64,000 bases of DNA from Schizochytrium sp. TIO01. Taxonomy: Eukaryota; Protista; Bigyra: Labyrinthulomycetes. Made by a program: the position numbers and the translations under genes. Location: the NCBI GenBank assembly GCA_004764695.1, contig SMSO01000036.1, positions 2,604,001 through 2,668,000 of the forward strand, in the 5' to 3' direction. The notes beneath the pieces were generated by a model. That model searched no databases and was not told where the DNA came from. It saw only the letters and a list, made by a program, of their open reading frames with translations. Numbering within the stretch: position 1 is the stretch's first letter; every line of letters begins with the position of its first letter. This document shows positions 10,601-45,278 of the stretch, in pieces.

Positions 10601-12032
10601 GAGCACATCACTAACAGCGATCGATTGTAAACACACGTGTTTCTAGATCATGGTTTACTCCGTTTCGTACTGATTTCCACTGCTACATTTATATAGAACC
10701 GACTGTTCACATTTATTTTCAGAAACTAGGTATAACAAAGAAGAACTACTAACAAAAATTGATAAGTGTCATTAATTATGATTCCATCCCACTAGTTGTT
10801 GAGAAAATCGTCATTTCTTATGATGTTTAATTTTGAAGTCTATACGTATCTACTTCCATCTCGGAGCGTCTGATTTCCCCGCCGATTTTCTTGTTACTCT
10901 TCTTCTCTTTCCATATGTCTCTACGTTCTCGCAATTGCATTAATAAAATAAGTCTCAGAATAAAAAGCTTCTCTCTTTACCTTCATTCGTGCAAAGGAAA
11001 TTTAAAGGATTGATGACCAACCCTATTTCTGGGCTGGCAGAGGACAGTCCCTTTCAACGACAAAAAAAAACATGCTTTATATATGTTTATGCGACTGAAT
11101 TAAAGGTTCAATAAATTTTACATAAAATTTGATGATTCTTCAGATACCACTTGGTTGATTTCTGATAAAGGTTAGTGCAGAAGAGCAACTATGATTGGCC
11201 TGTTCTAACAGAAATGTTTCATTGTTAGGGCTCTTGATTGTTGGGACAGACTCTCCACCATGCTTCAGAGGCGGTGCCGCATACAAAATCCTGAAAAGTT
11301 TGGTCATTTTCACTCGATTTAAAGATAGAGGAACCTTTCAATTCTTAGCAATTAGCTCAAGTAATTTATTGTAATGCCAAAAGAGGTACGGACTTCAGGC
11401 AAACTGCAATGATATTGCGCACCCATTCAACAAATAAAATGCTGTGAGAAACACATGGCATGGCTTAAAATGCAAAGAAAATAAGGAGCTTCTTCTAAAC
11501 AGTGCGGGTTTCAACTGCCGATCTTGGTACTGTTAATACCGTCCCTTACATTAAAGAAACTGGAAAACATCTGAGGCTATGAATGAAGTACAAAAGAAGC
11601 CAAGAGTGCTCCTAGGATTTACAATCTACAGAAGAGGCCTTAAGTTAGTGATTAATTGTTTGGCCATGAGCTTTAAGTATTGAAATGCATCTGGTCGTTC
11701 TGAGAGAGTACTATGCCTCTCTGCAAATTCTCTTTTGATCATTTTAGTCAAATGGGTGATTTTGAGTATCACCCAAGTTTTAGAAAAATACAAGAATTAG
11801 GAGTTTCCCTCTTCTTAGCGCTCTCTTATCAATCCTTTCAGTACTTGAACAAACCCAGGGAAATACACACCAATACGCGCTGAATAGCGCCTGTCTAAGC
11901 TGATTTGGAGTGAGACTAGCCAGTGCTACTTCATGGTTCTTTGCTTGGACTTGATGAAAGGCAAAATAAGTTGGAAAAAAAGAAGGAAAAAAACTTGGAG
12001 TTGCTATTCAATCACAGCCAAAAAAAAAAAAA

Positions 12033-12150
12033 ACATTCAACACCGGGGCTTCGCATGCAGTCCCCTATCATACTACTGACCCGGCCCTACGCGACTTTAC
12101 TTCTCAGTGCGAATGAGATGAGGTGTTACCCGCGTGGTATGATCGAATGT
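12033..12150 (-). rRNA. 5S rRNA (copy 1)
   Basis: 118 nt; reverse complement ACATTCGATCATACCACGCGGG...AGTAGTATGATAGGGGACTGCATGCGAAGCCCCGGTGTTGAATGT. Paired ends, 5S internal motifs, followed by an oligo-T terminator. Confidence 0.95.
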
Positions 12151-12563: not shown

Positions 12564-12678
12564 GTTGCGGTGACCGAGTGGTTAAGGTGGTGGACTGCTA
12601 TGTGTCTCACTAGTCTGAGATCAATATGTCTTGATCCATTGTTCTCCGAACGCCTGGGTTCGAATCCCAGCCGCAACG
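12564..12678 (+). tRNA. tRNA-Ser(GCT) with intron (~12601-12633)
   Basis: Acceptor GTTGCGG/CCGCAAC, D-arm ACCGAGTGGTTAAGGT, anticodon arm GTGGA-CT-GCT-A[intron]A-TCCAT, long variable arm, GGTTCGAATCC, downstream T-run. Confidence 0.92.
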
Positions 12679-12908
12679 AAGATATTTTTTAATTCATGTT
12701 GTTTCCTGAGTATATATAGAGTTCGTATATGGTCTGTAGGAATGTTTATTAGCTTTTTTTTTTATCTTTAATTTTTTTTTTGCTTTGCAGTGCAGGGCCT
12801 TTTCTGAGATTTGTTAGGTAAATTTAACGAATAGTTGAACCATGTGAAATATTGTAGTTATAATATTCAGCCATAAATCCGAATTCATCCTCATTAAATT
12901 AGTGAGAG

Positions 12909-12924
12909 GCGGTCTTAGCTCAGG

Positions 12925-12957
<33 letters not shown>

Positions 12958-12981
12958 TGCGTTCGATCCGCGGAGACCGCA
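12909..12981 (+). tRNA. tRNA-Phe(GAA)
   Basis: GCGGTCT/AGACCGC acceptor, TCAGA-CT-GAA-GA-TCTGA anticodon arm, GTTCGATC T-loop. Confidence 0.95.
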
Positions 12982-13229
12982 TTGTTTTTATACTTGTTGA
13001 TGATACTTTTATCATTGGTATTTTTTATTTTTTTTTTTCTCTGAAGAGGTAAGTGGTTGGGAGGCTCGTCTTTTTGGGGTGTAATTAAAAAAAAAAATAG
13101 ATTGGATGATTATAAGAACGAAAGAAAGAGAAAATATTGAGAAGAGAGCGAGGCAACTTATCATTAAGACGTTTAAGTTTGGACTCCATTATGAATATTA
13201 CGATACTCTCCTTCGAAAGTGATCCATGA

Positions 13230-13329
13230 GCAACTATGGCCAAGTGGTAAGGCGCTGCACTTGTACACAGTCTAGAGATCTAGCTATCATACTATGCAGT
13301 GATCCAGAGTTCGATCCTCTGTAGTTGCA
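13230..13329 (+). tRNA. tRNA-Thr(TGT) with intron (~13266-13293)
   Basis: GCAACTA/TAGTTGC acceptor, CTGCA-CT-TGT-A[intron]..TGCAG anticodon arm, GTTCGATC T-loop. Confidence 0.88.
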
Positions 13330-14799
13330 AATTTATATTTTTTTGGTTTATATTCTCGGGAATGAAAAAAAGGCCATTTAGGCGTTATCATTGGAGCCTT
13401 TTCTACATAAGTGCTTCTTTTAAAATTGCATATTTATTTATTTTGCTAATAAGCAAGGACTTATAGTTTTCTCCATCGTTAAGTTTAATCAGCAGTTTAT
13501 TATAATCATCTAACTTCGATTAAAACTTCGTGATTGTCGAATGAATAGTTTTTTATACGAGTTACATTAGAGTGTTTTCATGTTGGAAAATTGAGTTTTT
13601 CGAAGAGCGAGGAAGAACCCGGTTTAGACTGTAAATTTTTATGTTCTTTGAGGTCTTTAGTTCAGTAGCTACGAGGGTTGCATTGTTTTCCTTCTTATAT
13701 GCAGAGCAACTCAATTTCATACAGCACGCAATTAATTTTGCTTCTTTTTCTTGAACATATGTTGACCTTTGAAAGACTCGTTTCCATCATAATTTCGCAA
13801 GTCGATTCATTTTTTCACAATTAGGCGCAAATAAGCTTTTTGTGCTTGTTTCCAGATTTAGATATATGTCCAATACTGTTTGCTTGATATGTTTTTATGT
13901 TGAAATGACACAGATGAGCGGAGTTTTTTTAAAGGAAATTTTAAAATAGCTATAAAATTTGCATCATACGCTATTGTAGTAATCTTGTTTAAATTTGATG
14001 AATAGATTTTCTAGGTGACACAAACATATGAATTTGTAAAACGTTCTTATATTACTTTTCTAAATTGCAGAGATTCCCAATCGAAGGAATTAAGAGATAA
14101 GGCATTGCTAGTTCCAGGCATCCCTTTGCAACGACCTCGTGGATATAGGAATTGCGATAGAGTAGAACTAGAAAACCAGGCTCGCGTGGTTGAGAAGCCA
14201 AGAACCAAAAATGTGACTACGTATTCCCTAGAATCAAGTATTTTGCGACTTGAATTGATGGTTGAAGAAGCTGACTCAGTCTAACCAGACCAATTCTATG
14301 TAACAAAGTTCAAGAATGTCTTAGCTTTCTAATTGGTATATAAATCAGCCCGCCTTAAAGTTCGTTTCCCAAGGACAGAAGTTTGCCAACTCTTTAAACC
14401 AACCTTATTTTAGCCTTTCTCAAGACTCTTGCATTCATTTGCATAGTCAACCTCCAGATCCAACCTCAGAATATATATTTAAAGGGAAATGTTAGCATAT
14501 TAGCGAGGACACAAGCTGGTGGCTTTGTAGACATTTATTAATTCTATTTATTAAACAGACGCTATTGGTTTAAATTGGGAATCTCTTTTTTTGGAGGGGG
14601 GGAAGAGAGGGGGGAAGATATCTCCAAAGATTAAGAAACGTACTTTCTTTCGAAACTTGTAAAATTTAACGTCTAAGGGAAGAGAATACTCTGCTGGAAT
14701 ACATTATTATTGAAAATAATCTCTTAACTGATTAAATATTTATTACGTGGAAATGAGCCATCTGAAGTAACCAGCAGTTATGAAGCAAACGTTTCTCTT

Positions 14800-14871
14800 G
14801 CAGGTGTAGCTCAGTGGTAGAGCGTCCGCCTGACACGCGGAAGGTCACGAGTTCGATCCTCGTCATCTGTA
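14800..14871 (+). tRNA. tRNA-Val(GAC)
   Basis: GCAGGTG/CATCTGT acceptor (two G-U pairs), TAGCTCAGTGGTAGAGC D-arm, TCCGC-CT-GAC-AC-GCGGA anticodon arm, ACGAG-TTCGATC-CTCGT T-arm, T-run downstream. Confidence 0.88.
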
Positions 14872-15193
14872 AATCGATTTTTTTTACATTTTAATTGGTT
14901 AGGGGGGGGAGTCGTTTGCAATTTACAACTTGCAGAGGTTTTAATTAGATAACCCCACATGAAACAAATACGTACGTACTAAACCAAAAGGCAGCGATGA
15001 TGTATTTTTTGTTGCCATGTTGAAAACCCCATATTGTTTATAAGAAGACATAAATTAAAAAGAAAAAATGATGTTTGCATTCTTTTTACAAAAAAAAAAA
15101 AATTCAAAATAATATGTTTGGGTTAACTTTTCTACATACCTACAAATGGAGTTGTAGGATTGCTCTGGTGTCAGGCTACGGCAATTAGCCTGT

Positions 15194-15266
15194 GCTCGGA
15201 TAGCTCAGTTGGTAGAGTGACAGTTTAGTAAGCTGTTGGTCCCGAGTTCGACTCTCGGTTCGAGCA
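15194..15266 (+). tRNA. tRNA-Thr(AGT)
   Basis: GCTCGGA/TTCGAGC acceptor, ACAGT-TT-AGT-AA-GCTGT anticodon arm, GTTCGACTC T-loop, immediate poly-T terminator. Confidence 0.92.
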
Positions 15267-16452
15267 TTTTTTTTTTTAAATATTGGTTGATTATACTTTT
15301 TTTGTGGTGCGAATATCGATTTATGAAGAGATGCTACGAAGAGCCTTATTGCCGGGCAAACGCCTTTAAATAATTATAAGAACCTTTACATTGAAACATC
15401 TTTAGTTCCTAATAAGGTAACAATGCTTGAGTTCTACAAAATGTATGTTTGGCCGCTTACGATGCCCCTGTCGAGTTCTATTATACAAAACAGAAACGAA
15501 TGGTATTTAAAGTTCATTGATTGCACTTTGTAGCCAATCCAGATATACATGAAGGACATAAATGTCTGTCATGTAAGACCTAGAGCCATCTTCAATGGCG
15601 TTGACATTACATGAAAGACATGTTTTGTCTGCCGTGTAAAACTAGAGGCAACTCAGATGGCTTTGAGATTAGGAAGTCTCATTTTGACAACTTCATGAGT
15701 CAGTGATTCTATACTGTTCTCAAATTTAACGCATAAATAATTTGCGAGTGAGTCCCTGCCTATCTGCAGCAAGTACAGAATCAATTTTATCGTTGCTTTG
15801 CCTTGAGACTCAGTTGTCCCAGTCTTTTGAAATCAATTTCGCGAATAATAATTATTCTAAGTAGCTCCCACAATGATTCTTGCTATAAGAGTAGGTAAAA
15901 CAGAACGTCCGGCAGAAACAATATTTTTACACAGGATTGCGCACTCAACTTCAAACTTGATGATGGATATTTCTACTAACCAAAACTTAATTTATAACTA
16001 CAATTACTAAGCCACAGACTACGATGGAATAGAACACCCACCACAAAGATTTTATACAACACATGACGTAGATCGTGAGGACTACAGAGAAGCTCTATGC
16101 ACTCTAAGCCTCGATTATGAGTATGAAATAAAGAAATCAAAAAGATCATCTCGTGTTTTTGGTTTCACTCATTAAAATTTAATTTTAAGTATTTAAAGAA
16201 GAAATTATAAAATTATAAAGAAATATACATATATGTGTTTTGGTCAAGTTTGAAAAAAAAAAAAATGGGCAGGTGAACGAATACATACAAACACACTCAC
16301 TTGTTTTAAAAAATGCTACTGCTGAGGTCTAATCTATAAATGCTATCACTGAACGAGGCTATTCCTATCAAGATTTTCACTGGAGAAAAAATGCAAGTCA
16401 AACATTTGATTCCACAGTTACTTTATTTTTGGAGAAAAAAAATGTATTTGAG

Positions 16453-16526
16453 AATCTCCGGCGGGACTTGAACCCACGATCTCCTGATTCGTAGTCAGGC
16501 ACCTTATCCAACTTGGCCACGGAGAC
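16453..16526 (-). tRNA. tRNA-Arg(ACG) (copy 1)
   Basis: Reverse complement GTCTCCGTGGCCAAGTTGGATAAGGTGCCTGACTACGAATCAGGAGATCGTGGGTTCAAGTCCCGCCGGAGATT; anticodon arm CCTGA-CT-ACG-AA-TCAGG. Confidence 0.92.
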
Positions 16527-22860: not shown

Positions 22861-23148
22861 CATTGTTTCTCTGGTGAAGCGACAACGACCACCTCAGTCA
22901 CAATGTTGTCAGTCTCATCGATTCTGCTCTCTTGGCTCATATCAATGGTAATTTGATATGAAAATCTTGCCCTGCGTGATTTAGTCGATTATAAACAAGA
23001 GCAGTGCGTTTCGGGAGATGTTAAGCGCCAGAGACATTGCTGACCTATTTCTTTCGAGTATGAGCTTATTCACCTACACCCACAGACATTGTTAAACCGT
23101 GGAGTTGCTTTCTTCTGGTGCTAAGTTAAAAAAGAAAAGGAGAAAAAG

Positions 23149-23266
23149 ACATTCAACACCGGGGCTTCGCATGCAGTCCCCTATCATACTACTGACCCGG
23201 CCCTACGCGACTTTACTTCTCAGTGCGAATGAGATGAGGTGTTACCCGCGTGGTATGATCGAATGT
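23149..23266 (-). rRNA. 5S rRNA (copy 2)
   Basis: Same 118-nt sequence as copy 1. Confidence 0.95.
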
Positions 23267-24093: not shown

Positions 24094-26454
24094 ATGCCTG
24101 GAAACCGACGCCAGCAAAGCGACAACCGGGAGGAGCGAGCAGCCAAGAAAAAGAAACAATCTGCAGAGCGTGCTGCTAGACACGCTGCTGACGCTGCTAG
24201 AGCTGAGCAGATCAGTGTGGATGATATCAAGAGTCTTAGTCTTCATGAAATCAACGAGGACTTGAGTCCTAGTCTGATATGTCTGCTTTCAATTGATAGA
24301 ATAGCGGCGCTCATTGAAAGAATATATGTTTTTTTAGATGAAGACGGCCGTTCCATAGAGGTTTGGGCTGACCCCGATGACGTGGAGGATATTCATAGCG
24401 GTGACCCAGAAACCTTGCTTGAACTTGTAGAACGAACAGAAGACTTGCAAAACTATGCTGATATGAAAGTTTTAGATGCAATTTGCAAAAGGCTAATTCG
24501 TTTATCAGCGGAACAGTTTCGAGCTAGAGCAGAAACTGCTGAAGAAAGAGCAGAAGCTGAGAGAGCTGGACGCGAAACTGCTGAAGAAAGAGCAAAAACT
24601 GCTGAAGAAAGAGCAAAGCAACTAGAGAGTAGTCTGGATATTTTAGTTGCTCTGCAAAACCTTGCAGAGGCCCCTGAAGTGGAAAAGGAAAAGGCTTACA
24701 AAGCTGCAAAGAAGCTACTGGATAAGGAAAACGAGGACCTAGATAAAGAAGTCGACGAGGACGCTACGTATTGTAGAAGAATGTATGATGAAAAAGCCGA
24801 GTCGGATCAACAAGTGTTGGGAAATCCCCATATATCTCGCTTAAGTAAGTGTCTAGACAAGGCACTATTTTTAGAACTTACTGATACGGGACCTGGTACT
24901 TCGAGCAGTGCTGTCAGGGGGACTTCACTTCCACCCCAATCGTTGCGAGAGTGGTCTATTGATGCCTTCCAAAGTGAAATTGTTGGGTCCATGTACCAAA
25001 ACCTTCCTATAGAGTCTACACGAACCTTTGACATTGTGTTTGAAAGTAAAACAACGCCTTTTAACAGACGAAGCAATGAGAGCGACGCGTTTTTGCAGGG
25101 AATTTCGACAGGTATTATTGCGCCTTTCTTTTCGACTGTCTTTAGAGGCGATACATTTCCTGGGGGCGGGAATATTGTGCAGTTCCCAACAACAGAAGTT
25201 ATAACCGCACTAAACTCGCGGCCTGACCTCACATGGCGCGCTTCCAAAGTGGACTCCCAAACAGTTGATATTTTTCTTGTACACGAGCAGAAAGCTCCTT
25301 CTGATTTCCCGGTGGACGCGTCGCACCAGCAGGATAATTGGTTCGATTTATTCAAAGCCGCGGGTCCCCTTGCTTCGGTTGAACAAAACATAAATATGAA
25401 TATGATGGGTGCTGGAAAACCGCGGTTGGGAATTTACCAGGTTTACAGTTATATGGTTATCCTCGGCTTGGAGTTTGGTGTACTGAGTACAACACGGTTT
25501 ACGTGGTTCCTGAAGCGTGACAATGAAGGCACCTTATGGATCACCAAGGGATTTTCGTGTATGGAAGAAGGAAGGACATCACTCAGAAACGCGTATTTTT
25601 GTCTACTTTGCTATATTCTGCATTCGCCTAGGCGTGGCCAGCTGGAAAACCCCACTGGAAAGCTTGCTGTTAATGTGAAAAATCACTGGTCAGAGCAGAT
25701 CTCTCGGTTGCCAGAAGACTGCACTAGGCCCGGTGCTTCAGTTCTTCGTGGACTAAAGAACTCAAGTTCTGGAAGCCAAGGCTCCAGCTCGGTACAAAGT
25801 ACCATGCCATCGCAGACTGATAATGCCAAAATGACCGCGGATTCAAGTGCAAATGCAAGTGGATTTCAATCTGAAAGGCAAGCAGGATTGAGGTGGGGAA
25901 GTACCTTCGAGATGCCACTTCCGTGGGAGCCTTCCTACGTGACCCTTTGTACGACTCACTCAGCCCACATTGCCCGAATGACTCTCAATAATGGTAAGGG
26001 ACCTGATGCAGTAGTCAAGACCCTTTCCTATCCGAAGCGCCGAGAAGAAGCTGATGCCATTGAATCTACATTCGTGAACGAAATACAAATGTATTGCGGA
26101 CCTTTGCAGAAACTGCAAGGCACTGTGGTGCCTCGATTTATCTTTGGTGGGATTTATTCGAAAATGGAGCGCTTCCTTGTAGTTACTGAGTATGGGGGTG
26201 ATACGCTCCTCAAACTTTCACAGCAACAAGTGCTTACCACCCGTATACAACGCTGTGCTCATGAGGCCTTAATGGCAGTACACAGGGCTGGTGTGCTTCA
26301 CAATGATGTTGCTCTACATAACTTTTTATGGAATGGCGAATCTGTGGTGGTAATTGACTTTGGCAGATCTTATGTCTGTACTGATCTTGAGCAATTTGCC
26401 AGAGAAGCTGACGACCTCGAAATGCTGTTGAGTCAACATGAATCAATGAGTTGA
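24094..26454 (+). CDS. Crinkler-like effector: coiled coil + PD-(D/E)xK restriction-endonuclease-like domain + C-terminal kinase-like domain, 786 aa
   Basis: AEERA coiled-coil repeats. REase-like: RPDLTW...FLVHEQKAP...GIYQVYSYM..LGLEFGVLSTTRFTWFLKR. Kinase-like: VVKT...NEIQMY...LQGTVVPRF...VHRAGVLHNDVALHNFLW...VVIDFGRS. Confidence 0.85.
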   Translation: MPGNRRQQSDNREERAAKKKKQSAERAARHAADAARAEQISVDDIKSLSLHEINEDLSPSLICLLSIDRIAALIERIYVFLDEDGRSIEVWADPDDVEDIHSGDPETLLELVERTEDLQNYADMKVLDAICKRLIRLSAEQFRARAETAEERAEAERAGRETAEERAKTAEERAKQLESSLDILVALQNLAEAPEVEKEKAYKAAKKLLDKENEDLDKEVDEDATYCRRMYDEKAESDQQVLGNPHISRLSKCLDKALFLELTDTGPGTSSSAVRGTSLPPQSLREWSIDAFQSEIVGSMYQNLPIESTRTFDIVFESKTTPFNRRSNESDAFLQGISTGIIAPFFSTVFRGDTFPGGGNIVQFPTTEVITALNSRPDLTWRASKVDSQTVDIFLVHEQKAPSDFPVDASHQQDNWFDLFKAAGPLASVEQNINMNMMGAGKPRLGIYQVYSYMVILGLEFGVLSTTRFTWFLKRDNEGTLWITKGFSCMEEGRTSLRNAYFCLLCYILHSPRRGQLENPTGKLAVNVKNHWSEQISRLPEDCTRPGASVLRGLKNSSSGSQGSSSVQSTMPSQTDNAKMTADSSANASGFQSERQAGLRWGSTFEMPLPWEPSYVTLCTTHSAHIARMTLNNGKGPDAVVKTLSYPKRREEADAIESTFVNEIQMYCGPLQKLQGTVVPRFIFGGIYSKMERFLVVTEYGGDTLLKLSQQQVLTTRIQRCAHEALMAVHRAGVLHNDVALHNFLWNGESVVVIDFGRSYVCTDLEQFAREADDLEMLLSQHESMS

Positions 26455-30649: not shown

Positions 30650-31985
30650 CCATCCATCTTCTCAAGGATCTTTGGACACCTTCTCGGTCTGGTTTTCCAG
30701 GCGTTTCGATAGTCTTTTGACTAGTTCTTTGACCTGTCCTCATTTCATGATTAGTGGTGCTTCGGTACCGTACGAAAAGACTTTGTGTCCCTGCCGCTCT
30801 GACTCGATGCTCCATAAGAATTGTACTTCTGTCAGTAGTGGAGTTGCTCTCAAGAATAGGAGAAAGCTTAAAGCAACACCTTTCCATCATCAACTCTCTC
30901 TCTGCTGAGACTTCACAGCAGTCTTATTAATTAGTGTTGCGCAACAGATGCCCCGAGTGTACAAACCCAGTGACGCTTCCCTCAGCGTTTTGTAGAGAAT
31001 TCCGTTTCTGAACGATGAGGGAAGACCTCTCAAAAGCGGCGGCTGAGGCAGAGTTTTCAGGAGTGTTGAACAGGTAAGTTCTCAAGGAGGAGTCCAATCT
31101 CCTGAGTTCGAAGCGGCAGGGAAGAAGATAGACCGGGGACGAGGGGGCCTTGCACACACGGGCATTTCAGCAGGACCTCTCACTCCCGACTTGCTTAACA
31201 ATGAATAGAGTCCCATGTACCGCGCCAGAGTTTCACATGGACCAAACTCTTCATTCAAGATTTGCTTTGAGTAGGCCTAATTATTGAACTAGTAGTAGAC
31301 TTGCTAGAACGTCAGTACTAGGTACCCACTGACCTGTTTAAAGTGACGAACGAACCAAAGTATTTACTTAAGCAAATCATTTTCCGATTATGCATTGTTT
31401 TCGATGTTTTTTAGCGAAATTGCCTGACTTGAGAGAAAAACAGCGCCGGGAAACATATATGCTTAGTGAGAACTGAATGAGTCGCTAATATTCAAAGATC
31501 CCAGGAGCAGAGATGCGAGTGCCCCGTAGTGTCGACAATTTCAAAGAATATTTTGGTATCAACATTAGGAAGACTTTTCTTTTGGGGCAAGACAATAATC
31601 ATTTTATTTTCTAGGTATCGAAAAGGCAAACAGCTTGTAAAAGGAGATACATGCAATACTGAATATTGGATAGAAGCTGAGTATAGCATGAGTGGTTGGT
31701 TTTGTCTGGAGTATATAGCCCCAAAATATTGTTGAAAGCATCTCAATCAAGATGCTGTTACTCTCGTCGACTCTGCACCCTTGACTCATACAATCGGTGA
31801 TTGATTGCAATGTTGTGTGCAAATGATCGCGTTGAATCAGAACAACGACATTCCCTTCAACGAGTAAGCAATCTTGCTGTCGTATGCGCCGGAAGAAATT
31901 TAGATACTCACCTTTGCAAAACAAAACTGGAAACCTTGGAGTTGCTTTCTTGTAGTGCTACGGAAAAAAATGAACGGAGAAAAAA

Positions 31986-32103
31986 ACATTCAACACCGGG
32001 GCTTCGCATGCAGTCCCCTATCATACTACTGACCCGGCCCTACGCGACTTTACTTCTCAGTGCGAATGAGATGAGGTGTTACCCGCGTGGTATGATCGAA
32101 TGT
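31986..32103 (-). rRNA. 5S rRNA (copy 3)
   Basis: Same 118-nt sequence as copies 1 and 2. Confidence 0.95.
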
Positions 32104-32574: not shown

Positions 32575-32658
32575 ATGTCAGACCACCCACGTGTTGTCGC
32601 TGCTCTTGAACAGCTTCAGAATGGCGCTACAAAACTGTAGTAAGTTAACACTGTACTC

Positions 32659-32738
<80 letters not shown>

Positions 32739-35700
32739 TGCACGGTGTTGCTTTTGTTGTTATTGTTTTGCAAGTTTATACAATGGCTGGTTTGTTTGTT
32801 TTTTGTTTGATGGATGGATGGATGGATGGATGGATGGATGAGTTGTCTGTTTGAGTGAGTATACATCCATCGAACAAAGAGCAAAATGACAACACAACAA
32901 AGATAAATGCTGACAGCCAACCTAGATCACTCACGTTCATGCATGCATGCGTGCATCTATTGTAATATGTAACGTGTAATGTATTGCTTGCCATCATTCA
33001 ATCAAATCGACAGTCTTTTGTACAACGATATCGGCGACGAGGGCGCCAAGGCAGTGGGTGCGGCGCTGAAAGAGAACCGGTCGCTGACATCACTTGAGTA
33101 AGTTGTCTACGCAACACCGCAGCTCGTGGACTTGTTTGTACATGATGCTTGGTTTGTTATTTGGTGGGTGAGTCGGTGTTGTTTTGCAAGTTTATGCAAT
33201 CGCTTGTTTGTTTGATGGATGAATGAGTTGTCTGTTTGAGTGAGTATACATCCATCGAACAAAGAGCAAAATGACAACACAACAAAGATAAATGCTGAAA
33301 GACAACCTAGATCACTCACGTCCATGCATGCATGCGTGCATCTATTGTAATATGTAACCTGTAATGTATTGCTTGCCATCATTCAATCAAATCGACAGTC
33401 TTGAACGCAACGAAATCGGCTCAGAGGGCGGCAAGGCAGTGGGTGCGGCGCTGAAAGAGAACCGGTCGCTGACATCACTATCGTAAGTTGTCTACGCAAC
33501 ACCTCAGCTCGTGGACTTGTTTGTACATGATGGTTGGTTTGTTGTTTGGTGGGTGGGTCGGTGTTGTTTTGCAAGTTTATGCAATCGCTTGTTTGTTTGA
33601 TGGATGGATAAGTTGTCTGTTTGAGTGAGTATACATCCATCGAACAAAGAGCAAAATGACAACACAACAAAGATAAATGGTTAAAGCCAGCCTAGATCAC
33701 TCACGTCCATGCATGCATGCGTGCATCTATTGTAATATGTAACGTGTAATGTATTGCTTGCCATCATTCAATCAAATCGACAGTCTTGCGGGCAACAATA
33801 TCGGCTCAGAGGGTGCCAAGGCAGTGGGTGCGGCGCTGAAAGAGAACCAGTCGCTGACATCACTATCGTAAGTTGTCTACGCAACACCGCAGCTCGCGAA
33901 CTTGTTTGTACATGATGCTTGCTTCGTTGGTGTGTTATTTTGGTCGGTGTTGTTTTGCAAGTTTATGCAATCGGCTGTTTGTTTGGTGGATGGATGAGTT
34001 GTCTGTTTGAGTGAGTATACATCCATCGAACATAGAGCAAAATGACAACACAACAAAGATAAATGGTTAAAGCCAACCTAGATCACTCACGTCCATGCAT
34101 GCATGCGTGCCTCTATTGTAATATGTAACGTGTAATGTATTGCTTGCCATCATTCAATCAAATCGACAGTCTTCAAAGCAACGATATCGGCGACGAGGGC
34201 GCCAAGGCAGTGGGTGCGGCGCTGAAAGAGAACCGGTCGCTGACATCACTCAAGTAAGTTGTCTACGCAACACCGCAGCTCGTGGACTTGTTTGTACATG
34301 ATGCTTGGTTTGTTGTTTGGTGGGTGGGTCGGTGTTGTTTTGCAAGTTTATGCAATCGCTTGTTTGTTTGATGGATGGATGAGTTGTCTGTTTGAGTGAG
34401 TATACATCCATCGAACAAAGAGCAAAATGACAACACAACAAAGATAATAGCTGACAGCCAACCTAGATCACTCACGTCCATGCATGCATGCGTGCATCTA
34501 TTGTAATATGTAACGTGTAATGTATTGCTTGCCATCATTCAATCAAATCGACAGTCTTGGAAGGAATAATATCGGCTCAGAGGGCGGCAAGGCAGTGGCT
34601 GCGGCGCTGAAAGAGAACCGGTCGCTGACATCACTATCGTAAGTTGTCTACGCAACACCGCAGCTCGTGGACTTGTTTGTACATGATGCTTGGTTTGTTG
34701 TTTGGTGGGTGGGTCGGTGTTGTTTTGCAAGTTTATGCAATCGCTTGTTTGTTTGATGGATGGATGAGTTGTCTGTTTGAGTGAGTATACATCCATCGAA
34801 CAAAGAGCAAAATGACAACACAACAAAGATAAATGCTGAAAGCCAACCTAGATCACTCACGTCCATGCATGCATGCGTGCATCTATTGCATCTATTGTAA
34901 TATGTAACGTGTAATGTATTGCTTGCCATCATTCAATCAATTCGACAGTCTTGGAGGCACCAGTATCGGCTCAGAGGGCGCCAAGGCAGTGGCTGCGGCG
35001 CTGAAAGAGAACCGGTCGCTGACATCACTATCGTAAGTTGTCTACGCAACACCACAGCTCGTGGACTTGTTTGTACATGATGGTTGGTTTGTTGTTTGGT
35101 GGGTGGGTCGGTGTTGTTTTGCAAGGTTATGCAATCGCTTGTTTGTTTGATGGATGGATGAGTTGTCTGTTTGAGTGAGTATACATCCATCGAACAAAGA
35201 GCAAAATGACAACACAACAAAGATAAATGCTGAAAGCCAACCTAGATCACTCACGTCCATGCATGCATGCGTGCATCTATTGTAATATGTAACGTGTAAT
35301 GTATTGCTTGCCATCATTCAATCAAATCGACAGTCTTTCGGGGAATGATATCGGCGACGAGGGCGCCAAGGCAGTGGCTGCGGCGCTGAAAGAGAACCGG
35401 TCGCTGACATCACTCAAGTAAGTTGTCTACGCAACACCGCAGCTCGTGGACTTGTTTGTACATGATGCTTGGTTTGTTGTTTGGTGGGTGGGTCGGTGTT
35501 GTTTTGCAAGTTTATGCAATCGCTTGTTTGTTTGATGGATGGATTGGTTGTCTGTTTGAGTGAGTATACATCCATCGAACATAGAGCAAAATGACAACAC
35601 AACAAAGATAAATGCTGAAAGCCAACCTAGATCACTCACGTCCATGCATGCATGCGTGCATCTATTGTAATATGTAACGTGTAATGTATTGCTTGCCATC

Positions 35701-38700
35701 ATTCAATCAAATCGACAGTCTTTCGGGGAATGATATCGGCGACGAGGGCGCCAAGGCAGTGGCTGCGGCGCTGAAAGAGAACCGGTCGCTGACATCACTA
35801 TCGTAAGTTGTCTACGCAACACCGCAGCTCGTGGACTTGTTTGTACATGATGCTTGGTTTGTTGTTTGGTGGGTGGGTCGGTGTTGTTTTGCAAGGTTAT
35901 GCAATCGCTTGTTTGTTTGATGGATGGATGAGTTGTCTGTTTGAGTGAGTATACATCCATCGAACAAAGAGCAAAATGACAACACAACAAAGATAAATGG
36001 TTAAAGCCAACCTAGATCACTCACGTCCATGCATGCATGCGTGCCTCTATTGTAATATGTAACGTGTAATGTATTGCTTGCCATCATTCAATCCAATCGA
36101 CAGTCTTCAAAGCAACGATATCGGCGACGAGGGCGCCAAGGCAGTGGGTGCGGCGCTGAAAGAGAACCGGTCGCTGACATCACTCAAGTAAGTTGTCTAC
36201 GCAACACCGGAGCTCGTGGACTTGTTTGTACATGATGCTTGGTTTGTTGTTTGGTGGGTGGGTCGGTGTTGTTTTGCAAGTTTATGCAATCGCTTGTTTG
36301 TTTGATGGATGGATGAGTTGTCTGTTTGAGTGAGTATACATCCATCGAACAAAGAGCAAAATGACAACACAACAAAGATAAATGCTAAAAGCCAACCTAG
36401 ATCACTCACGTCCATGCATGCATGCGTGCCTCTATTGTAATATGTAACGTGTAATGTATTGCTTGCCATCATTCAATCAAATCGACAGTCTTCAAAGCAA
36501 CGATATCGGCGACGAGGGCGCCAAGGCAGTGGCTGCGGCGCTGAAAGAGAACCGGTCGCTGACATCACTCAAGTAAGTTGTCTACGCAACACCGCAGCTC
36601 GTGGTCTTGTTTGTACATGATGGTTGGTTTGCTGTTTGGTGGGTGGGTCGGTGTTGTTTTGCAAGTTTATGCAATCGCTTGTTTGTTTGTTTGTTTGATG
36701 GATGGATAAGTTGTCTGTTTGAGTGAGTATACATCCATCGAACAAAGAGCAAAATGACAACACAACAAAGATAAATGCTGAAAGCCAACCTAGATCACTC
36801 ACGTCCATGCATGCATGCGTGCATCTATTGTAATATGTAACGTGTAATGTATTGCTTGCCATCATTCAATCAAATCGACAGTCTTTATAGCAACGGAATC
36901 GGCGACGAGGGCGGCAAGGCAGTGGCTGCGGCGCTGAAAGAGAACCGGTCGCTGACATCACTTGAGTAAGTTGTCTACGCAACACCACAGCTCGTGGACT
37001 TGTTTGTACATGATGGTTGGTTTGTTTTTTGGTGGGTGGGTCGGTGTTGTTTTGCACGTTTATGCAATCGCTTGTTTGTTTGATGGATGGATGAGTTGTC
37101 TGTTTGAGTGAGTATACATCCATCGAACAAAGAGCAAAATGACAACACAACAAAGATAAATGCTGAAAGCCAACCTAGATCACTCACGTCCATGCATGCA
37201 TGCGTGCATCTATTGCATCTATTGTAATATGTAACGTGTAATGTATTGCTTGCCATCATTCAATCAAATCGACAGTCTTGGAGGCAACGAGATCGGCTCA
37301 GAGGGCGCCAAGGCAGTGGGTGCGGCGCTGAAAGAGAACCGGTCGCTGACATCACTTGAGTAAGTTGTCTACGCAACACCGCAGCTCGTGGACTTGTTTG
37401 TACATGATGGTTGGTTTGTTGTTTGGTGGGTGGGTCGGTGTTGTTTTGCAAGTTTATGCAATCGCTTGTTTGTTTGATGGATGGATGAGTTGTCTGTTTG
37501 AGTGAGTATACATCCATCGAACAAAGAGCAAAATGACAACACAACAAAGATAAATGCTGAAAGCCAACCTAGATCACTCACGTCCATGCATGCATGCGTG
37601 CATCTATTGCATCTATTGTAATATGTAACGTGTAATGTATTGCTTGCCATCATTCAATCAAATCGACAGTCTTGATGGCAACGAGATCGGCTCAGAGGGC
37701 GCCAAGGCAGTGGGTGCGGCGCTGAAAGAGAACCGGTCGCTGACATCACTTGAGTAAGTTGTCTACGCAACAGCGCAGCTCGTGGACTTGTTTGTACATG
37801 ATGGTTGGTTTGTTGTTTGGTGGGTGGGTCGGTGTTGTTTTGCAAGTTTATGCAATCGCTTGTTTGTTTGATGGATGAATGAGTTGTCTGTTTGAGTGAG
37901 TATACATCCATCGAACAAAGAGCAAAATGACAACACAACAAAGATAAATGCTGAAAGACAACCTAGATCACTCACGTCCATGCATGCATGCGTGCATCTA
38001 TTGTAATATGTAACCTGTAATGTATTGCTTGCCATCATTCAATCAAATTGACAGTTTTGAAGGCAACCGCATCGGCGACGAGGGCGCCAAGGCAGTGGCT
38101 GCGGCGCTGAAAGAGAACCGGTCGCTGACATCACTATCGTAAGTTGTCTACGCAACACCGGAGCTCGTGGACTTGTTTGTACATGATGCTTGGTTTGTTT
38201 TTTGGTGGGTGGGTCGGTATTGTTTTGCAAGTTTATGCAATCTCTTGTTTGTTTGATGGATGGATGAGTTGTCTGTTTGAGTGAGTATACATCCATCGAA
38301 CAAAGAGCAAAATGACAACACAACAAAGATAAATGCTGAAAGCCAACCTAGATCACTCACGTCCATGCATGCATGCGTGCATCTATTGCATCTATTGTAA
38401 TATGTAACGTGTAATGTATTGCTTGCCATCATTCAATCAAATCGACAGTCTTGGAGGCAACGAGATCGGCTCAGAGGGCGCCAAGGCAGTGGGTGCGGCG
38501 CTGAAAGAGAACCGGTCGCTGACATCACTATCGTAAGTTGTCTACGCAACACCGCAGCTCGTGGACTTGTTTGTACATGATGGTTGGTTTGTTGTTTGGT
38601 GGGTGGGTCGGTGTTGTTTTGCAAGTTTATGCAATCGCTTGTTTGTTTGATGGATGGATGAGTTGTCTGTTTGAGTGAGTATACATCCATCGAACAAAGA

Positions 38701-41700
38701 GCAAAATGACAACACAACAAAGATAAATGCTGAAAGACAACCTAGATCACTCACGTCCATGCATGCATGCGTGCATCTATTGTAATATGTAACGTGTAAT
38801 GTATTGCTTGCCATCATTCAATCAAATCGACAGTCTTGGATACAACGGTATCGGCTCAGAGGGCGCCAAGGCAGTGGGTGCAGCGCTGAAAGAGAACCAG
38901 TCGCTGACATCACTATCGTAAGTTGTCTACGCAACACCGGAGCTCGTGGACTTGTTTGTACATGATGCTTGGTTTGTTGTTTGATGGGTGGGTCGGTGTT
39001 GTTTTGCAAGTTTGTGCAATCGCTTGTTTGTTTCATGGATGGATGAGTTGTCTGTTTGAGTGAGTATACATCCATCGAACAAAGAGCAAAATGACAACAC
39101 AACAAAGATAAATGCTGAAAGACAACCTAGATCACTCACGTCCATGCATGCATGCGTGCATCTATTGTAATATGTAACGTGTAATGTATTGCTTGCCATC
39201 ATTCAATCAAATCGACAGTCTTGCAGGCAACAAGATCGGCTCAGAGGGCGCCAAGGCAGTGGCTGCCGCGCTGGATGAAAATCATGTTCTTCAGGAAATA
39301 AGGTGAGTTTGTACAAATTAAAGAAATTTAATCGTAAGCTTGAGTGATATGAAATGAAGCTTTGAAGTGATTTAAACTAACAAATCAGAGTTGTATACCT
39401 TGGCAGTTTTGATTATTCTGATATCTCTCAAGACGTGATAGATCATATTGGTGACCGCTTAAAGCTGGTCAAAGATATAGTTGACGAATTCACAAAGTCT
39501 GCATTGAATGGTTTTTCAAAAGATGAAAAAGTGCGATGGGGTCGGGCGAAACTGATGGTAGTTGGGAAGGGGGGCGCTGGCAAGACATCAACTATTCGCA
39601 CGTTACTCGGTCAAGCATTCGTAGCGGAGCATGACTCGACCATTGGTGTAGAACTCAAGGTGATTCGCACGAAGGACTGGACAGAGGACCCACTAGGCAT
39701 TCACTCTGCTGATCTCAACGATGCTCTTGTAAAATTGCAGATCCTTAAAGATCGAAAGAGTCTTCTTCGCCAAAGTATTCGCAAATCATTGGCCAGACTT
39801 TCTGGACCTCGGATGGATAAAACCTTGAAACCTGAGCTCAAGGTCAAGACGGAGGAGGTGGCGAGAGTTTTTAGGGCTGATGTGAAATTCCAAATTGAAA
39901 AAGCTGGACGTACAAAAGCAGAGCAAGATGTCAGTTTCTCCATTTGGGATTACGGCGGGCAGGAGGTATTCTACGCTTTGCATCACCTTTTCCTAACTAA
40001 TTACGGGGTGTATGTGATCGTTTTCGATATGCGAGAAGTGATTGGAAAAGATAATTTCCAGGACTGTTCTGACTATGCGTTAATGGAGGACAGCGAGACG
40101 GCACTAAACACGATTCGATTCTGGCTAGACTCGATACGCTTACATGCGAATGGAGCCAAGGTGGTTCTTGTAGGGACATATCTCGATGCTTTACGCGATG
40201 CTAAGGAAGATCTGAACCTCATAAATATTGAATTGCGAAGGCTCTTGCCTCAAGCCACGGGCCTCCGCCTTGTAAGAAACAAGGCAGATCAATTGTACTT
40301 TTATCCTATGGATAACACTGAAAGGCAAGATTTGTCACGCTGTGAACTTCTTCGCAAACTTCTCATGACTACAGCGGCCTCGGAGCCTTATGTACAGGAG
40401 GAGGTGCCTTTGCGATGGTCTCTCTGTTTCGATCGTATGTTTAGAACTAAAAAAGACTACTTGGAGCTCGATGCTGTGTATGAGCTTGCAATGGGATCGT
40501 GCGGCATTTCAAAAGATGACGCTACGAAGATGCTGAAGTACATGCACGAACTGGGCGTTATTGTACATCTCACCTCCACACCCGTTCTGGCAAACTATGT
40601 GGTCCTGCAACCTCAATGGCTGCTGGACAACTTATCACGAGTAATTTGCGATCCAATACATATGGAAGTGCATGTGCAGAAAATGGAAGAGGCATCTTTA
40701 GAGGCTGATATACCAACAGATTGGTTTCGCGACCTAGACACATGGGAGAAACGTGGTGTTGCAAGTCGATTGTTTCTGTCAACATTATGGGGTCAACCTT
40801 TTTTAGTTGAGTACTTTTCCAAACTCATGACAGAGATGCTTCTGGCGAGCAGAAGCCCATGGATTGGAGACTTGGACGCAGAGGGAGCTTTGTTAATTCC
40901 CAGCTTATTAAAAACCATCTCTGAGGATGAGCTTCATGATCTCTTATCGCAATTTGAAGGTGCCGCTTTAGTGTATATCGAGTTTGACTTTTTCCCCAAA
41001 GGAGTATTCCAACGCTTTATTGCGAGTATGGTGTCAAAATTCCCTGTAGGGCTCGTTGAGGTTCTACAGGTGCACGCAAATGCGGCAAGCATCATATTTC
41101 GTGGCATTTCTGTCCTCCTGGTTCCGGATGATACTGGACGTCGTATTATCATGTATTTAGAAAATGATGAAGAAGACGAAAGCAGCGATTTACAGAGGCC
41201 AATAACAAACATTGTACAACTACTGCATACTCAACTGCAATCGATAGATGAAGCTTTCATGAAACAGAAATTGAATCCAAGGTTGTTTTTGAGCTGTGAT
41301 GGTACCACAAATGATCAAAGTTGTGCCTCTATTAGTGTTTTGGCAAACGCACGACGCGGTAAGGTTCCGTCTGTTGAGCGCAAGAAAATATTGAGGCTAT
41401 CATCCTTTCAGTTGTTTTTCGCCACCAAAGATGAGGCTGAAGAGATAGAATCGAAGATAACAGCACAACGAGAGAAGTATGACGTCTTCTTGTCACACGC
41501 TTGGGGCAAAGATAAGACAGTGCATAACCTTGTTTGCCGTGTAAGTGATAACTTGCAGAAAAATCATGGTATATCATGTTGGCTCGATCGAGATGAAATG
41601 CAACATGGCGAGATTACTCGTATAATGACTCAGGGTATCGATGATTCCAAAGTGGGCGTTGTCTTTGTTACACGGGAATACATGGAGAAGGTAAACTCTG

Positions 41701-41948
41701 ACCGCACAATAACAGATTACTGCCGTTACGAGTTTGAGTACCTGGTAAAGAGAAAGTCTCCAGTTCGAATGATTCCGGTTGTACTTGAGCAGGCTATGAC
41801 TGACCCAGGCGAGTGGATAGGCTTTTTTGGCGGTTGGTGGGGAATCAGTCCTCTTTATGTTGACATGACGAGTGGTGGATCTCCAAGTGAGGTTAAGGAG
41901 CTCCACAATATGGTTCGTCAGGTTCTTAGTGAAATTGAAAAATCATGA
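32575..41948 (+). CDS. Multi-exon LRR-ROC(GTPase)-COR-TIR protein (ROCO family), ~1350 aa, 19 exons
   Basis: Exon 1 is 32575-32639 (MSDHPRVVAALEQLQNGATKL, donor GTAAGT). Seventeen 84-nt LRR exons start at 33014, 33399, 33784, 34170, 34555, 34949, 35334, 35719, 36104, 36489, 36882, 37276, 37670, 38055, 38449, 38834 and 39219 (acceptor GACAG, donor GTAAGT/GTGAGT; consensus xLxxNxIG[DS]EGAKAV[GA]AALKENRSLTSL). The last exon 39389-41948 follows an ACTAAC branch point and CAG, and is in frame. It carries ROC motifs GKGGAGKTS, STIG, WDYGGQ and VGTYLD; COR motifs HELGVI..VVLQPQWL and PKGVFQRF; and TIR motifs YDVFLSHAW..CRYEF..IPVVLE. Confidence 0.9.
32659..32717. repeat. (GCTT)n microsatellite in intron 1 of the ROCO gene
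   Basis: About 14 GCTT units. A shorter homologous tract, merging into (GTTT)n, lies at ~45837-45962. Confidence 0.9.
32760..39302 (+). repeat. Tandem array 1 of ~385-bp intron+LRR-exon units (17 units)
   Basis: Period 385-394 bp; near-identical ~301-nt introns and 84-nt exons. Confidence 0.95.
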
Positions 41949-43057
41949 TTATCCTAAGTTTGAGCAATTGATGTTTCATATATGTTAGTGTTTGCTCTTG
42001 CACAACATTGTTTCTCATTAGCAGATGGACCCCGCTTCCCAAAATGAAACAGTCTACTGCTATTATTTGAGGCTTTGCTCCAATTGAACACGGGGTTTGT
42101 TTTCTTTTTAAAATAATTCAAGTAACTTCATTCGATTTTTATTTTTGTTCTTAGGTCTAATTGTCATTTTGAGAGCAACGATACCCTTTTTAGTGGTAAG
42201 TCTACTACGAGAAACAGTGTAAATACTTTATATCTTAACCTATAGTACTATGCCGAGCTAGTGAAAACTAGGCCAATAGATGTTGGCACTACAAACCTGA
42301 ACCCATTTATCAACTCACACATATACCAGGGCCACGCCTTTCTTATTTCGTGTCTACGTCTTTATACTCATATTATCCACGCTTCTCTTCATCAGACCCA
42401 TCGATGAAGGCTAAATTTCAACTATGTCGTGTATATTATCAAACTCGATTTTCAAAATATAATTGAACTGAAAGATCTGCCAACCCTTTTAACTGTTTGA
42501 CCAAGGAAGAGAGAGACAGTGCTGAAGGCGATTCGTCCCGAGACGCTTGTATATGAATACGGTGTGGTCTTGTCGGGATATACCTGGAAGTGATGCGCAA
42601 TTCAAAGGAAGGTTTTATGTTCAATAGGACAAAGTTGAGGAGTGTCTTACTTCGGGTTAAAGGTCTAGCCTTTGTAAGTAACTATTGAAGTAATATACAG
42701 CTACTGCCTAACTTCATCTCACCTCACATAACCTAGCTCTTCTATCCGACACCTCCTGTGTGTTGGACTGATATGATACATACATTCTGCCTGTATCCAG
42801 ACCCAAAACCCCAACAACTCATATATCATCCTCTTTCTCTTTCTCCTAAGTTTACCATCCTTGTCAGCACGCTTCACAGCACAAGCTACTCTGCAATAGT
42901 TTGGTAACTAAGCACATTAAATTGCCCTCTGCTTTTCGATAAAATTGAAAGAGAAAACCTGGTTTGAAGGAGAAAACAGTGCAATAAGGGATTTTGCACA
43001 AAGAATTGCGAATTGACTTTTTTTGTAACTAGCCCCTTTCATGGCTAAAAATAGTCA

Positions 43058-44349: not shown

Positions 44350-45221
44350 TGAGATTTGCTCAGGGCTTGGTATTGAAACAGCGAGATTTCTTTGGTGTGA
44401 CTCCTTCAATAAAAATTTCCTGGAAATTCCTGAGTTGGTATTCTCTATTGCGACTTGCACATAATTTTTTTTCGCGTAGGGCCAAAACTTGCTCAGATGC
44501 ATTTTGCATAACTTTTCTAGATCTCTCAGGGCCAACTTGCACAGGAAACATTTTTCGCGTAGGGCCAAAACCTGCTCAGGTGCATTTTGCATAACTTTTC
44601 CAGATCTCTCAGAGCCAGCTTGCACATGAAACAACTTTCGCGTAGGGCCAAAACTTGCTCAGATGCATTTTGCATAATTTTTCCAGATCTCTCAGGGCCA
44701 ACTTGCATAGCACTTTTTCTTCTCTCAGGGCCAAACCTTGCTCAGTGGCTTATTTGCATAACTTTTATGGGTCTCTTAGGGCCGAATTGCATTTTTTAAA
44801 AAAATCTCTCTCAGGGCCAAACCTTGTTCAGGGGCTTATTTGCAAATCATCTATCTTATTACTTAAGGCCTGACATCTGACAGGCCCTAAGAGAGCAGCT
44901 CAAAATCCTACTTTCAAATGCATGTCAACTGACAGGCTCTGAGAGAGCGGCTCAAAATTCTGCTTTCACATACATGTCATCTGACAGGCCCTAAGAGAGC
45001 GGCCTCACAAAACTAAAATTAGGTCTCTCTCATAGTTTTAGTGGTCTAATGTCAACTGACAGTCCCTAAGAGAGCGGCTTCTCCTCACAAAATTGAGTTT
45101 GTACTTAGGGCCTGTCCACCGACAGATTACACTAAAGTGAATTTCTGGCCTATTATTAATTAAGCATAAGCAGGGGCTATCAGTGGGCGTGAAGAGATTG
45201 TCAGCTGACAGGCCCTGAGAT
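44350..45221. mobile_element. Repeat-rich putative transposon end/foldback element abutting a truncated 5S gene
   Basis: 83-bp tandem units at 44474, 44557 and 44640 containing TCTCAGGGCC. Oppositely oriented repeats TGTCAnnTGACAGGCCCTRAGA at ~44871, 44923, 44975, 45050 and 45199. No transposase recognised. Confidence 0.5.
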
Positions 45222-45278
45222 ACTTTACTTCTCAGTGCGAATGAGATGAGGTGTTACCCGCGTGGTATGATCGAATGT
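45222..45278 (-). pseudogene. Truncated 5S rRNA (5' 57 nt only)
   Basis: Matches the 5' half of the other 5S copies; the 3' half is replaced by the repeat element. Confidence 0.9.

Follow-up and report, generated by a model that had tools for sequence, protein, structure and literature searches.

The gene design closest to the one described here is that of the brown-algal LRR-ROCO genes, which encode N-terminal leucine-rich repeats (LRRs) followed by a Roc-COR module and have been proposed as pathogen receptors. In Ectocarpus, each exon of 72 nt in these genes encodes one 24-aa LRR (Zambounis et al. 2012, PMC3341825), and brown-algal LRR-ROCO introns are in phase 2 (Teng et al. 2024, PMC11378527). 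A comparable design was found in a unicellular heterotrophic stramenopile, Schizochytrium sp. TIO01, within a stretch of 64,000 nt (hereafter the window; assembly GCA_004764695.1, contig SMSO01000036.1, positions 2,604,001 to 2,668,000 of the forward strand). Positions 32575-41948 of the window carry an apparent 385-bp satellite followed by an exon for Roc, COR and TIR domains. This "385-bp satellite" was confirmed to be the exon-intron array of a spliced LRR-GTPase-TIR gene.

The gene shares with brown-algal LRR-ROCO genes the N-terminal LRRs followed by Roc-COR, the single LRR per exon, the symmetric phase-2 exons, an exon number that varies among paralogs, a hypervariable concave face and a stramenopile host. 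It differs from them in exon length and LRR class (84 nt encoding a 28-aa ribonuclease-inhibitor-type LRR, against 72 nt encoding a 24-aa type I LRR), in its near-identical, satellite-like introns, in its position in subtelomeric ribosomal DNA (rDNA) head-to-head with a 5S gene, and in its C-terminal TIR domain (the word TIR is absent from the main text of PMC3341825, and PMC11378527 gives only peptidase and DUF900 C-terminal domains). As its exons are 84 nt rather than 72 nt long, the gene is an analogue or variant, and not a member, of the brown-algal exon family. The analogy with Ectocarpus that had been drawn from the sequence (hereafter the initial annotation) therefore held for the single LRR per exon (PMC3341825) and for phase 2 (PMC11378527), together with the difference in LRR class that it had pointed out. 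New here, on a known exon-per-LRR ROCO design, are the TIR effector, the satellite-like conserved introns and the rDNA-embedded subtelomeric position.

Proteins with the same domain order (LRR_6-Roc-COR-A-TIR_2) are encoded by Hondaea fermentalgiana, where they have been automatically named LRRK2, NOD2 or NLRP1. Over Roc-COR-TIR they are 44-46% identical to the protein described here, with which they share the 28-aa LRR consensus and the catalytic motif CRxEF, but only 4-6 LRRs are annotated in them; no publication discussing these Hondaea proteins was found. Literature searches on ROCO and TIR in thraustochytrids also found no description of an LRR-Roco-TIR family. Plant TIR-NLRs (nucleotide-binding LRR proteins with a TIR domain; TNLs), animal NLRs and bacterial Roco/TIR defence proteins resemble this gene in combining an LRR sensor with a nucleotide switch and a TIR effector, and also in forming a large, rapidly varying family of clustered genes. 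The switch is a Ras-like Roc-COR here, whereas NLRs have an NB-ARC/NACHT ATPase of the STAND (signal transduction ATPases with numerous domains) class, and the domain order LRR-switch-TIR is the reverse of that of plant TNLs. As it has no STAND NTPase, the gene is not an NLR, though it may work like one.

Exon-intron structure

Tandem Repeats Finder reported a 385-bp unit in 16.6 copies with 94% matches at 32829-39273. The initial annotation had resolved this apparent satellite into 17 exons of exactly 84 nt, all in phase 2 and bordered by GACAG and GT[AG]AGT. A regular expression for this pattern gave exactly 17 plus-strand matches between 33014 and 39302, and a looser exon pattern found no 84-nt LRR exon on the minus strand of the whole window. 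The 17 LRR exons start at 33014, 33399, 33784, 34170, 34555, 34949, 35334, 35719, 36104, 36489, 36882, 37276, 37670, 38055, 38449, 38834 and 39219, and all of them are open in a common frame (offset +1). They translate as LxxNxIGxEGAKAVxAALKENRSLTSL which, together with the split codon, makes one 28-aa LRR of the ribonuclease-inhibitor type; this consensus was present in all 17 translations, as the proposed LRR class implied. The regular expression and an alignment of the units placed 16 introns of 301-310 nt between these exons, and it is because the introns are nearly identical that the array reads as a satellite.

Upstream of the array, exon 1 (32575-32639, plus strand, read from the sequence) starts with ATG, is 65 nt long and ends in phase 2 before the donor GTAAGT. 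As had been proposed, it joins the array in frame, and the KLY at its end supplies the missing part of the LxLxxNxIG motif of the first LRR exon. Downstream, the last intron (39303-39406, plus strand; GTGAGT ... ttggcag, 104 nt) is unrelated in sequence to the array introns and leads into the last exon (39407-41948, plus strand; stop codon 41946-41948), which encodes a linker helix, the Roc GTPase, COR-A/COR-B and TIR. The frame is kept from exon 17 into the last exon through the split codon AG/T. The in-frame junction of the ROC-COR-TIR exon with the array thus stood, with fitting phases, while its length had to be corrected from the quoted 2.56 kb to 2,542 nt. The 19 exons add up to 4035 nt (65 + 17x84 + 2542), or 1,344 codons and a stop, contain no stop codon or frameshift, and have every splice site intact.

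Domain content and predicted structure of the last exon

Judged by its sequence, the last exon is a Roc GTPase with a COR dimerisation module and a C-terminal TIR domain that retains the catalytic glutamate. Pfam matches to Roc (2.3e-18; 67 bits against a cut-off of 27), to COR-A directly C-terminal of it (2.5e-11; 44 bits against 35) and to TIR_2 (5.1e-13; 50 bits against 28) all exceeded the curated cut-offs, in agreement with the ROC-COR-TIR module and TIR effector of the initial annotation; the exon also matched Pfam TIR (1.1e-05), and COR-B was weak by sequence (0.023). The GTPase motifs were intact in the 846-residue translation (P-loop GKGGAGKT at 53, DYGGQ at 181, TYLD at 257), so that the Roc domain with its G1, G3 and G4 motifs and the COR domain directly C-terminal of it place the protein among the ROCO family. 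No match to a NACHT or NB-ARC domain was found in the last exon, the P-loop domain being the Ras-like Roc. Single LRR exons scored 20.8 and 17.5 bits on LRR_6, below the cut-off of 23.4 bits, as expected for one 27-aa repeat.

In the same translation, the TIR motif DVFLSH lies at 692 and the catalytic glutamate E775 within CRYEF. By sequence, the nearest PDB matches of the TIR part were the TIRs of the bacterial NADases AbTir, PdTIR, BtpA and Cat1, and E775 aligned with the glutamate of the DWCWDELE of Cat1. E775 was kept in all eight close paralogs and in most homologs of the alignment. The fold and the catalytic glutamate, in a WxxxE-like motif, are those of TIR-domain NADases, and cleavage of NAD+ is a prediction. 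The other PDB sequence matches of the last exon were the LRRK2 Roc domain, Methanosarcina barkeri Roco2 and Chlorobium tepidum Roco. An AlphaFold2 model built from an alignment of 30 sequences (including 8 paralogs and 21 database homologs) reached a mean pLDDT (predicted local distance difference test) of 81.6 and a pTM (predicted template modelling score) of 0.70, and its best Foldseek matches were LRRK1, LRRK2 and the C. tepidum RocCOR tandem, over ~650-720 columns with E-values of 1e-17 to 1e-13.

Splicing of the array

As the initial annotation had predicted a junction at every exon border, these junctions were sought in public Logan contigs from four runs, mapped on positions 36050-42040. 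The joints in these contigs started exactly at predicted exon ends: their left edges were 36187, 36572, 36965, 38138 and 38532, and the skipped part began with GT. On their right side they continued in an LRR exon, often after a few letters (TCTT...) of the LRR exon start. The joint from 38532 to 38834 dropped exactly intron 15 (301 nt, GT..AG ends). Two contigs (X2 record 17 and X3 record 25) began to match exactly at the acceptor 39407, with 32 and 57 unplaced letters upstream. Among loose contig ends, first-exon-like ends were joined directly to TCTT... LRR exon starts, and in other contigs an LRR exon end was joined to a tail-exon-like start (AATGTCC...TTGACGGATGAA; see below). Contigs with 0-15 differences per record (at least 95% identity) lay on the unique Roc-COR-TIR exon and the 3' end in all four runs, the listed pieces being 116-527 nt long with gaps between them.

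Over the whole 64-Mb genome, the donor form CTGACATCACTNNN/GTRAGT, which served as a positive control, occurred at a minimum of 1,010 sites, and the intronless junction CTGACATCACTNNN/TCTT had no true match. The joined forms therefore come from RNA and cannot be genomic, and the LRR-array gene family is spliced at the predicted sites.

Two other readings of the exons were considered and rejected. A separate Roc-COR-TIR gene with its own start was discarded since no ATG-initiated frame spans the linker, the frame is continuous with exon 17 and the contigs stop at the acceptor; chance open reading frames (ORFs) in a satellite were discarded on the same continuity of frame and the same contig ends.

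Variation within the array and signs of selection

The 16 complete exon+intron units were aligned and pairwise differences were averaged per region. For the introns the mean pairwise difference came to 0.026 and for the constant exon portion to 0.024, compared with 0.27 for the 25 nt at the start of the exon and 0.62 for its final 3 nt. The introns, which the initial annotation had called near-identical, are thus 97% identical within the array, and the codons of the LRR beta-strand face differ ~10-25x more. All indels were intronic, the 84 exon columns being free of gaps.

The variation was concentrated in five codons (the split codon and positions 2, 3, 5 and 8), for which the Nei-Gojobori method gave a nonsynonymous divergence (dN) of 0.85 and a synonymous divergence (dS) of 0.54, compared with a dN of 0.029 and a dS of 0.067 for the other 23 (scaffold) codons. 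In a set of 134 exons from 16 genes, the entropy at these five positions was 2.1-3.4 bits, and 113 distinct signatures were counted. From what is established about LRR folds, we take these positions to be those marked x in xLxxNxIGx, which forms the beta-strand on the concave side of LRR proteins. By the Nei-Gojobori estimates and the entropy, the putative binding-face residues are hypervariable and bear signs of selection, as do the concave faces of brown-algal LRRs. Because the variable patch is contiguous in the mRNA but split by a conserved intron in the DNA, selection on the protein is favoured over a local mutational process.

Gene family and its dynamics

As counting the paralogs had been proposed, Roc-COR-TIR exons were searched genome-wide, and ~13-14 near-full-length copies with 70-89% protein identity were found, plus more distant ones. 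The number of LRR exons in 14 paralogs, each fetched with 10 kb of upstream sequence, ranged from 2 to 21, in keeping with the proposal that symmetric exons are added or lost without breaking the frame. Exon 1 was recognisable in 12 of the 14 paralogs and in a second LRR gene of the window, with 86-95% conservation over 44-63 aligned nt. The Roc-COR-TIR exons were 86-92% identical at the nucleotide level, and the exon of the gene at 32575-41948 had a dN/dS ratio (omega) of 0.24-0.36 against eight paralogs; by this measure, it is under purifying selection.

The introns of arrays on other contigs were 96-98% identical to those of the array at 33014-39302. Introns of one gene diverged by 3.1% and those of different genes by 3.7%, and for 20 of 67 introns the nearest neighbour belonged to another gene. 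As introns and scaffold codons are nearly identical both within and between the arrays of chromosome ends, concerted evolution by unequal crossover or gene conversion in subtelomeres is suggested. Compared with one paralog (L002, G000:C32; compared over 41100-42948 of the window), the last exon was a mosaic: its last ~280 codons (linker and TIR) had a dS of 0 and the 1-kb 3' flank was 99.9% identical, whereas the Roc-COR part had a dS of 0.2-1.0. Chromosome ends have evidently exchanged sequence here recently, the breakpoint lying within the exon. Identical variable patches occurred only inside one and the same gene (e.g. in LRR exons 4, 9 and 10 here) and mark recent local duplications. These comparisons indicate that the exon+intron unit duplicates in tandem, that chromosome ends exchange sequence and that the diversity of the predicted binding face is retained against homogenisation. 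At the evolutionary level, the diversification proposed in the initial annotation was therefore supported by hypervariable binding-face codons, by paralogs with 2-21 exons and by local exon duplication.

The second LRR gene of the window (45753-50849) contains another 385-bp array, detected by tandem repeat search at 45984-49792 (9.9 copies). Its first exon (45753-45817) is identical to exon 1 at 58 of 65 nt. Eleven 84-nt LRR exons follow (46125-50228), and the last exon, which starts at 50513, reads on in frame into a tail of 111 aa. This tail had no known domain in Pfam and no match in a protein atlas search. The tail exon is present in ~100 copies genome-wide, typically just downstream of arrays, so that most arrays belong to LRR-plus-tail genes and the Roc-COR-TIR form is the minority. 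The family comprises ~15 LRR-Roc-COR-TIR genes and ~100 LRR-plus-short-tail genes, in subtelomeric rDNA units. The stretch that separates the two LRR genes of the window contains a tandem repeat with an 83-bp unit (44468-44791; 3.9 copies, 83% matches).

Chromosomal setting and the LORE-TEARS elements

The ATG of the LRR-Roc-COR-TIR gene is separated by ~470 bp from a 5S rRNA gene (31985-32103, minus strand; Rfam RF00001, 96.5 bits) in head-to-head orientation. The module of 5S gene, ~470-bp spacer and first exon recurred in at least seven paralogs, and on contigs C3, C4, C5, C6, C7, C8 and C13 LRR arrays are preceded by 5S genes at a distance of ~1 kb. Given this conserved head-to-head arrangement, one short divergent region is common to a gene of RNA polymerase III (Pol III) and a Pol II gene. 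Rfam also detected 5S rRNA genes at 12032-12150 and 23148-23266 (both minus strand) and, downstream of both LRR genes, a complete 18S-5.8S-28S unit (54582-60124, plus strand), and a 57-nt 5S remnant was found upstream of the second LRR gene (45222-45278). Both ends of contig C3 bear (TTAGG)n, and LRR arrays lie ~20-30 kb further in.

Clusters of tRNA genes (8 Rfam matches) lie among the 5S genes (12564-16526) and just downstream of the 28S (61106-62012). A 786-aa ORF (24094-26454) starts just after the 5S gene at 23148 and has a weak protein-kinase/APH-like C-terminus (Pkinase 5e-06, below the cut-off).

In Aurantiochytrium limacinum MYA-1381, telomeres consist of TTAGG repeats, the 18S-28S genes are transcribed towards the telomere and the 5S genes away from it, and the elements named LORE-TEARS lie between the 5S and 18S-28S genes (bioRxiv 10.1101/2023.06.15.545109). 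LORE-TEARS were reported to have no similarity to GenBank sequences and were suggested to serve in chromosome-end maintenance; group 0 comprises 94 elements between 5S and 18S, with a median unit of 385 bp and 1.8-20.6 units per element (same preprint). No publication on LORE-TEARS besides this preprint was found in the literature searched. The arrays described here, with a ~385-bp unit in 2-21 copies between 5S and 18S near a TTAGG telomere, share with group 0 the unit length, the copy range, the 5S-to-18S layout and the transcription directions relative to the TTAGG telomere. The published total for group 0 is also comparable, with 94 x 9.3 = ~870 units against the 1,010 or more donor sites found here. 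In layout, the window is a subtelomeric rDNA unit like those of A. limacinum. The group 0 LORE-TEARS, published as non-coding, appear to be these exon-intron arrays, judging from length, number and position rather than from sequence comparison. Here, unlike in the published account, the arrays read as exons and introns of expressed LRR genes.

The contigs are also larger than the published A. limacinum chromosomes, which measure 1-4 Mb (bioRxiv 10.1101/2023.06.15.545109). Contigs C13, C24 and C30, some 5.8-9.8 Mb long, carry clusters of 5S genes and LRR arrays far from their ends, and the assembly may chain several chromosomes through shared subtelomeres or may represent a different strain.

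Proposed mechanism and alternative explanations

With this domain architecture, it is plausible that the LRR-Roc-COR-TIR protein is an innate immune sensor. Its first exon would be driven from the ~470-bp region shared head-to-head with the 5S rRNA gene, and the LRR solenoid would bind a ligand on its concave face. In the manner of LRRK2 and bacterial Roco proteins, binding might then release or change the Roc-COR GTPase switch and its state as a dimer or oligomer. The TIR domains thus brought together could cleave NAD+ or produce ADP-ribose-derived signals. Such working would be NLR-like overall, with a Roco switch replacing NB-ARC or NACHT. At the level of the gene, the exon+intron unit would duplicate in tandem, array length would shift without breaking the frame, and the five binding-face codons of each repeat would stay diverse while introns and scaffold codons are homogenised. 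The TIR domains of diverse protists are active NADases (bioRxiv 10.64898/2026.04.20.719644). The immune function, and any somatic diversification, are inferences.

Overall, we consider it probable that the locus is a real spliced 19-exon gene for an LRR-Roc-COR-TIR protein of ~1,344 aa, with NLR-like working and with concerted evolution that has left the diversity of the binding face in place. Several observations weigh against this. The splicing evidence consists of Logan contigs rather than raw reads, from runs whose RNA origin was a guess by the mapping software. The contigs break in repeats, and most joints have 22-46 letters on their short side and are also attributable to a paralog or another strain; with such short sides and a large family, most joints prove splicing of the family at these sites and not of this gene alone. 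The joint from 39302 to 39407 was absent among the 15 joints listed, and some intron bins carried contig depth that could stem from unspliced RNA, DNA carry-over or multi-mapping. The variable codons have a high dS too, so that besides recurrent positive selection there are two further options, a local mutational process and ancient diversity that has escaped homogenisation. The equation with LORE-TEARS is based on agreement in length, number and position, and the ligand, the GTPase and NADase activities and the role in defence are all at the level of prediction.

That the joints are not uniquely assignable to the gene at 32575-41948, and that some paralog matches carry stops, would fit a locus that is a recently dead member of the family, transcribed or silent but yielding no functional protein, with all contig joints derived from paralogs. 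This is very improbable, as the 19 exons have kept their frame and splice sites, omega against the eight paralogs is 0.24-0.36, and in all four runs the unique Roc-COR-TIR exon is covered in part by contigs of at least 95% identity, two of which stop exactly at its acceptor. The published account of repeats of the same size and position as non-coding, the location of the arrays between rRNA genes near TTAGG telomeres and the homogenisation of their introns across chromosome ends would instead suit a non-coding subtelomeric spacer or satellite (LORE-TEARS) serving chromosome-end or rDNA maintenance, with incidental frames and a Roc-COR-TIR exon that is a separate gene or a relic. Such a spacer is extremely improbable given that the open frame of exactly 84 nt, the canonical splice sites and the LRR consensus are intact in 17 of 17 units, that indels are restricted to the intron part, that scaffold codons have a dN below dS, that spliced junctions occur in public contigs and nowhere in the genome, that the exon phases fit exon 1 and the Roc exon, and that homologs in Hondaea hold LRR, Roc, COR and TIR in one protein. 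A structural role of the array DNA besides coding is possible.

The protein may also be a genuine LRR-Roco-TIR protein that acts in housekeeping or developmental signalling (cytoskeleton, trafficking, ectoplasmic net, life-cycle transitions), like LRRK2 or the Dictyostelium Roco kinases, with LRR variation that reflects relaxed constraint. Among solved structures, LRRK1/2 and C. tepidum Roco are nearest in fold, ROCO genes of brown algae are responsive to many kinds of stress (PMC11378527), and an immune role is deduced here from features of the gene and not from infection data. Nevertheless, relaxed constraint would not be expected to confine variation to five predicted binding-face codons per repeat, at ~30x the intron divergence and with a conserved scaffold, and the family is large, with variable copy number. 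In bacteria, plants and animals, TIR is chiefly an immune or cell-death module, and the effector here is a TIR with a conserved catalytic glutamate. A housekeeping or developmental role was therefore considered rather unlikely.

Beyond the single gene of an LRR-Roc-COR-TIR sensor, the ~100 subtelomeric LRR arrays might, as a tentative extension, form one recombining repertoire. As the introns are near-identical within and between chromosome ends, ectopic recombination or gene conversion inside introns could keep mixing binding-face cassettes among arrays and between the short-tail genes and the ~15 Roc-COR-TIR genes, possibly together with frame-neutral exon skipping. In that case, clones or strains would differ in receptor specificities, comparable to var/VSG-type subtelomeric variation or to the assembly of lamprey variable lymphocyte receptors (VLRs), and the coupling to 5S and rDNA would supply the homogenising and expression context.

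Implications

For annotation, the locus is a caution that arrays whose introns are more conserved than their exons get masked as satellites, so that genes are lost. If the reading proposed here is true, repeats published as "non-coding chromosome-end repeats" would be the exons and introns of ~100 expressed LRR genes, and this protist would have a candidate sensor in every one of its subtelomeric rDNA units. Receptors built with one LRR per exon would then occur beyond brown algae, in a distant stramenopile that is unicellular and genetically tractable, and the TIR effector ties the finding to current work on NAD-based immunity in eukaryotes at large. Mirusviruses persist in Aurantiochytrium (PMC12606086), in which knock-outs are also feasible, so that the immune hypothesis would be directly testable there.

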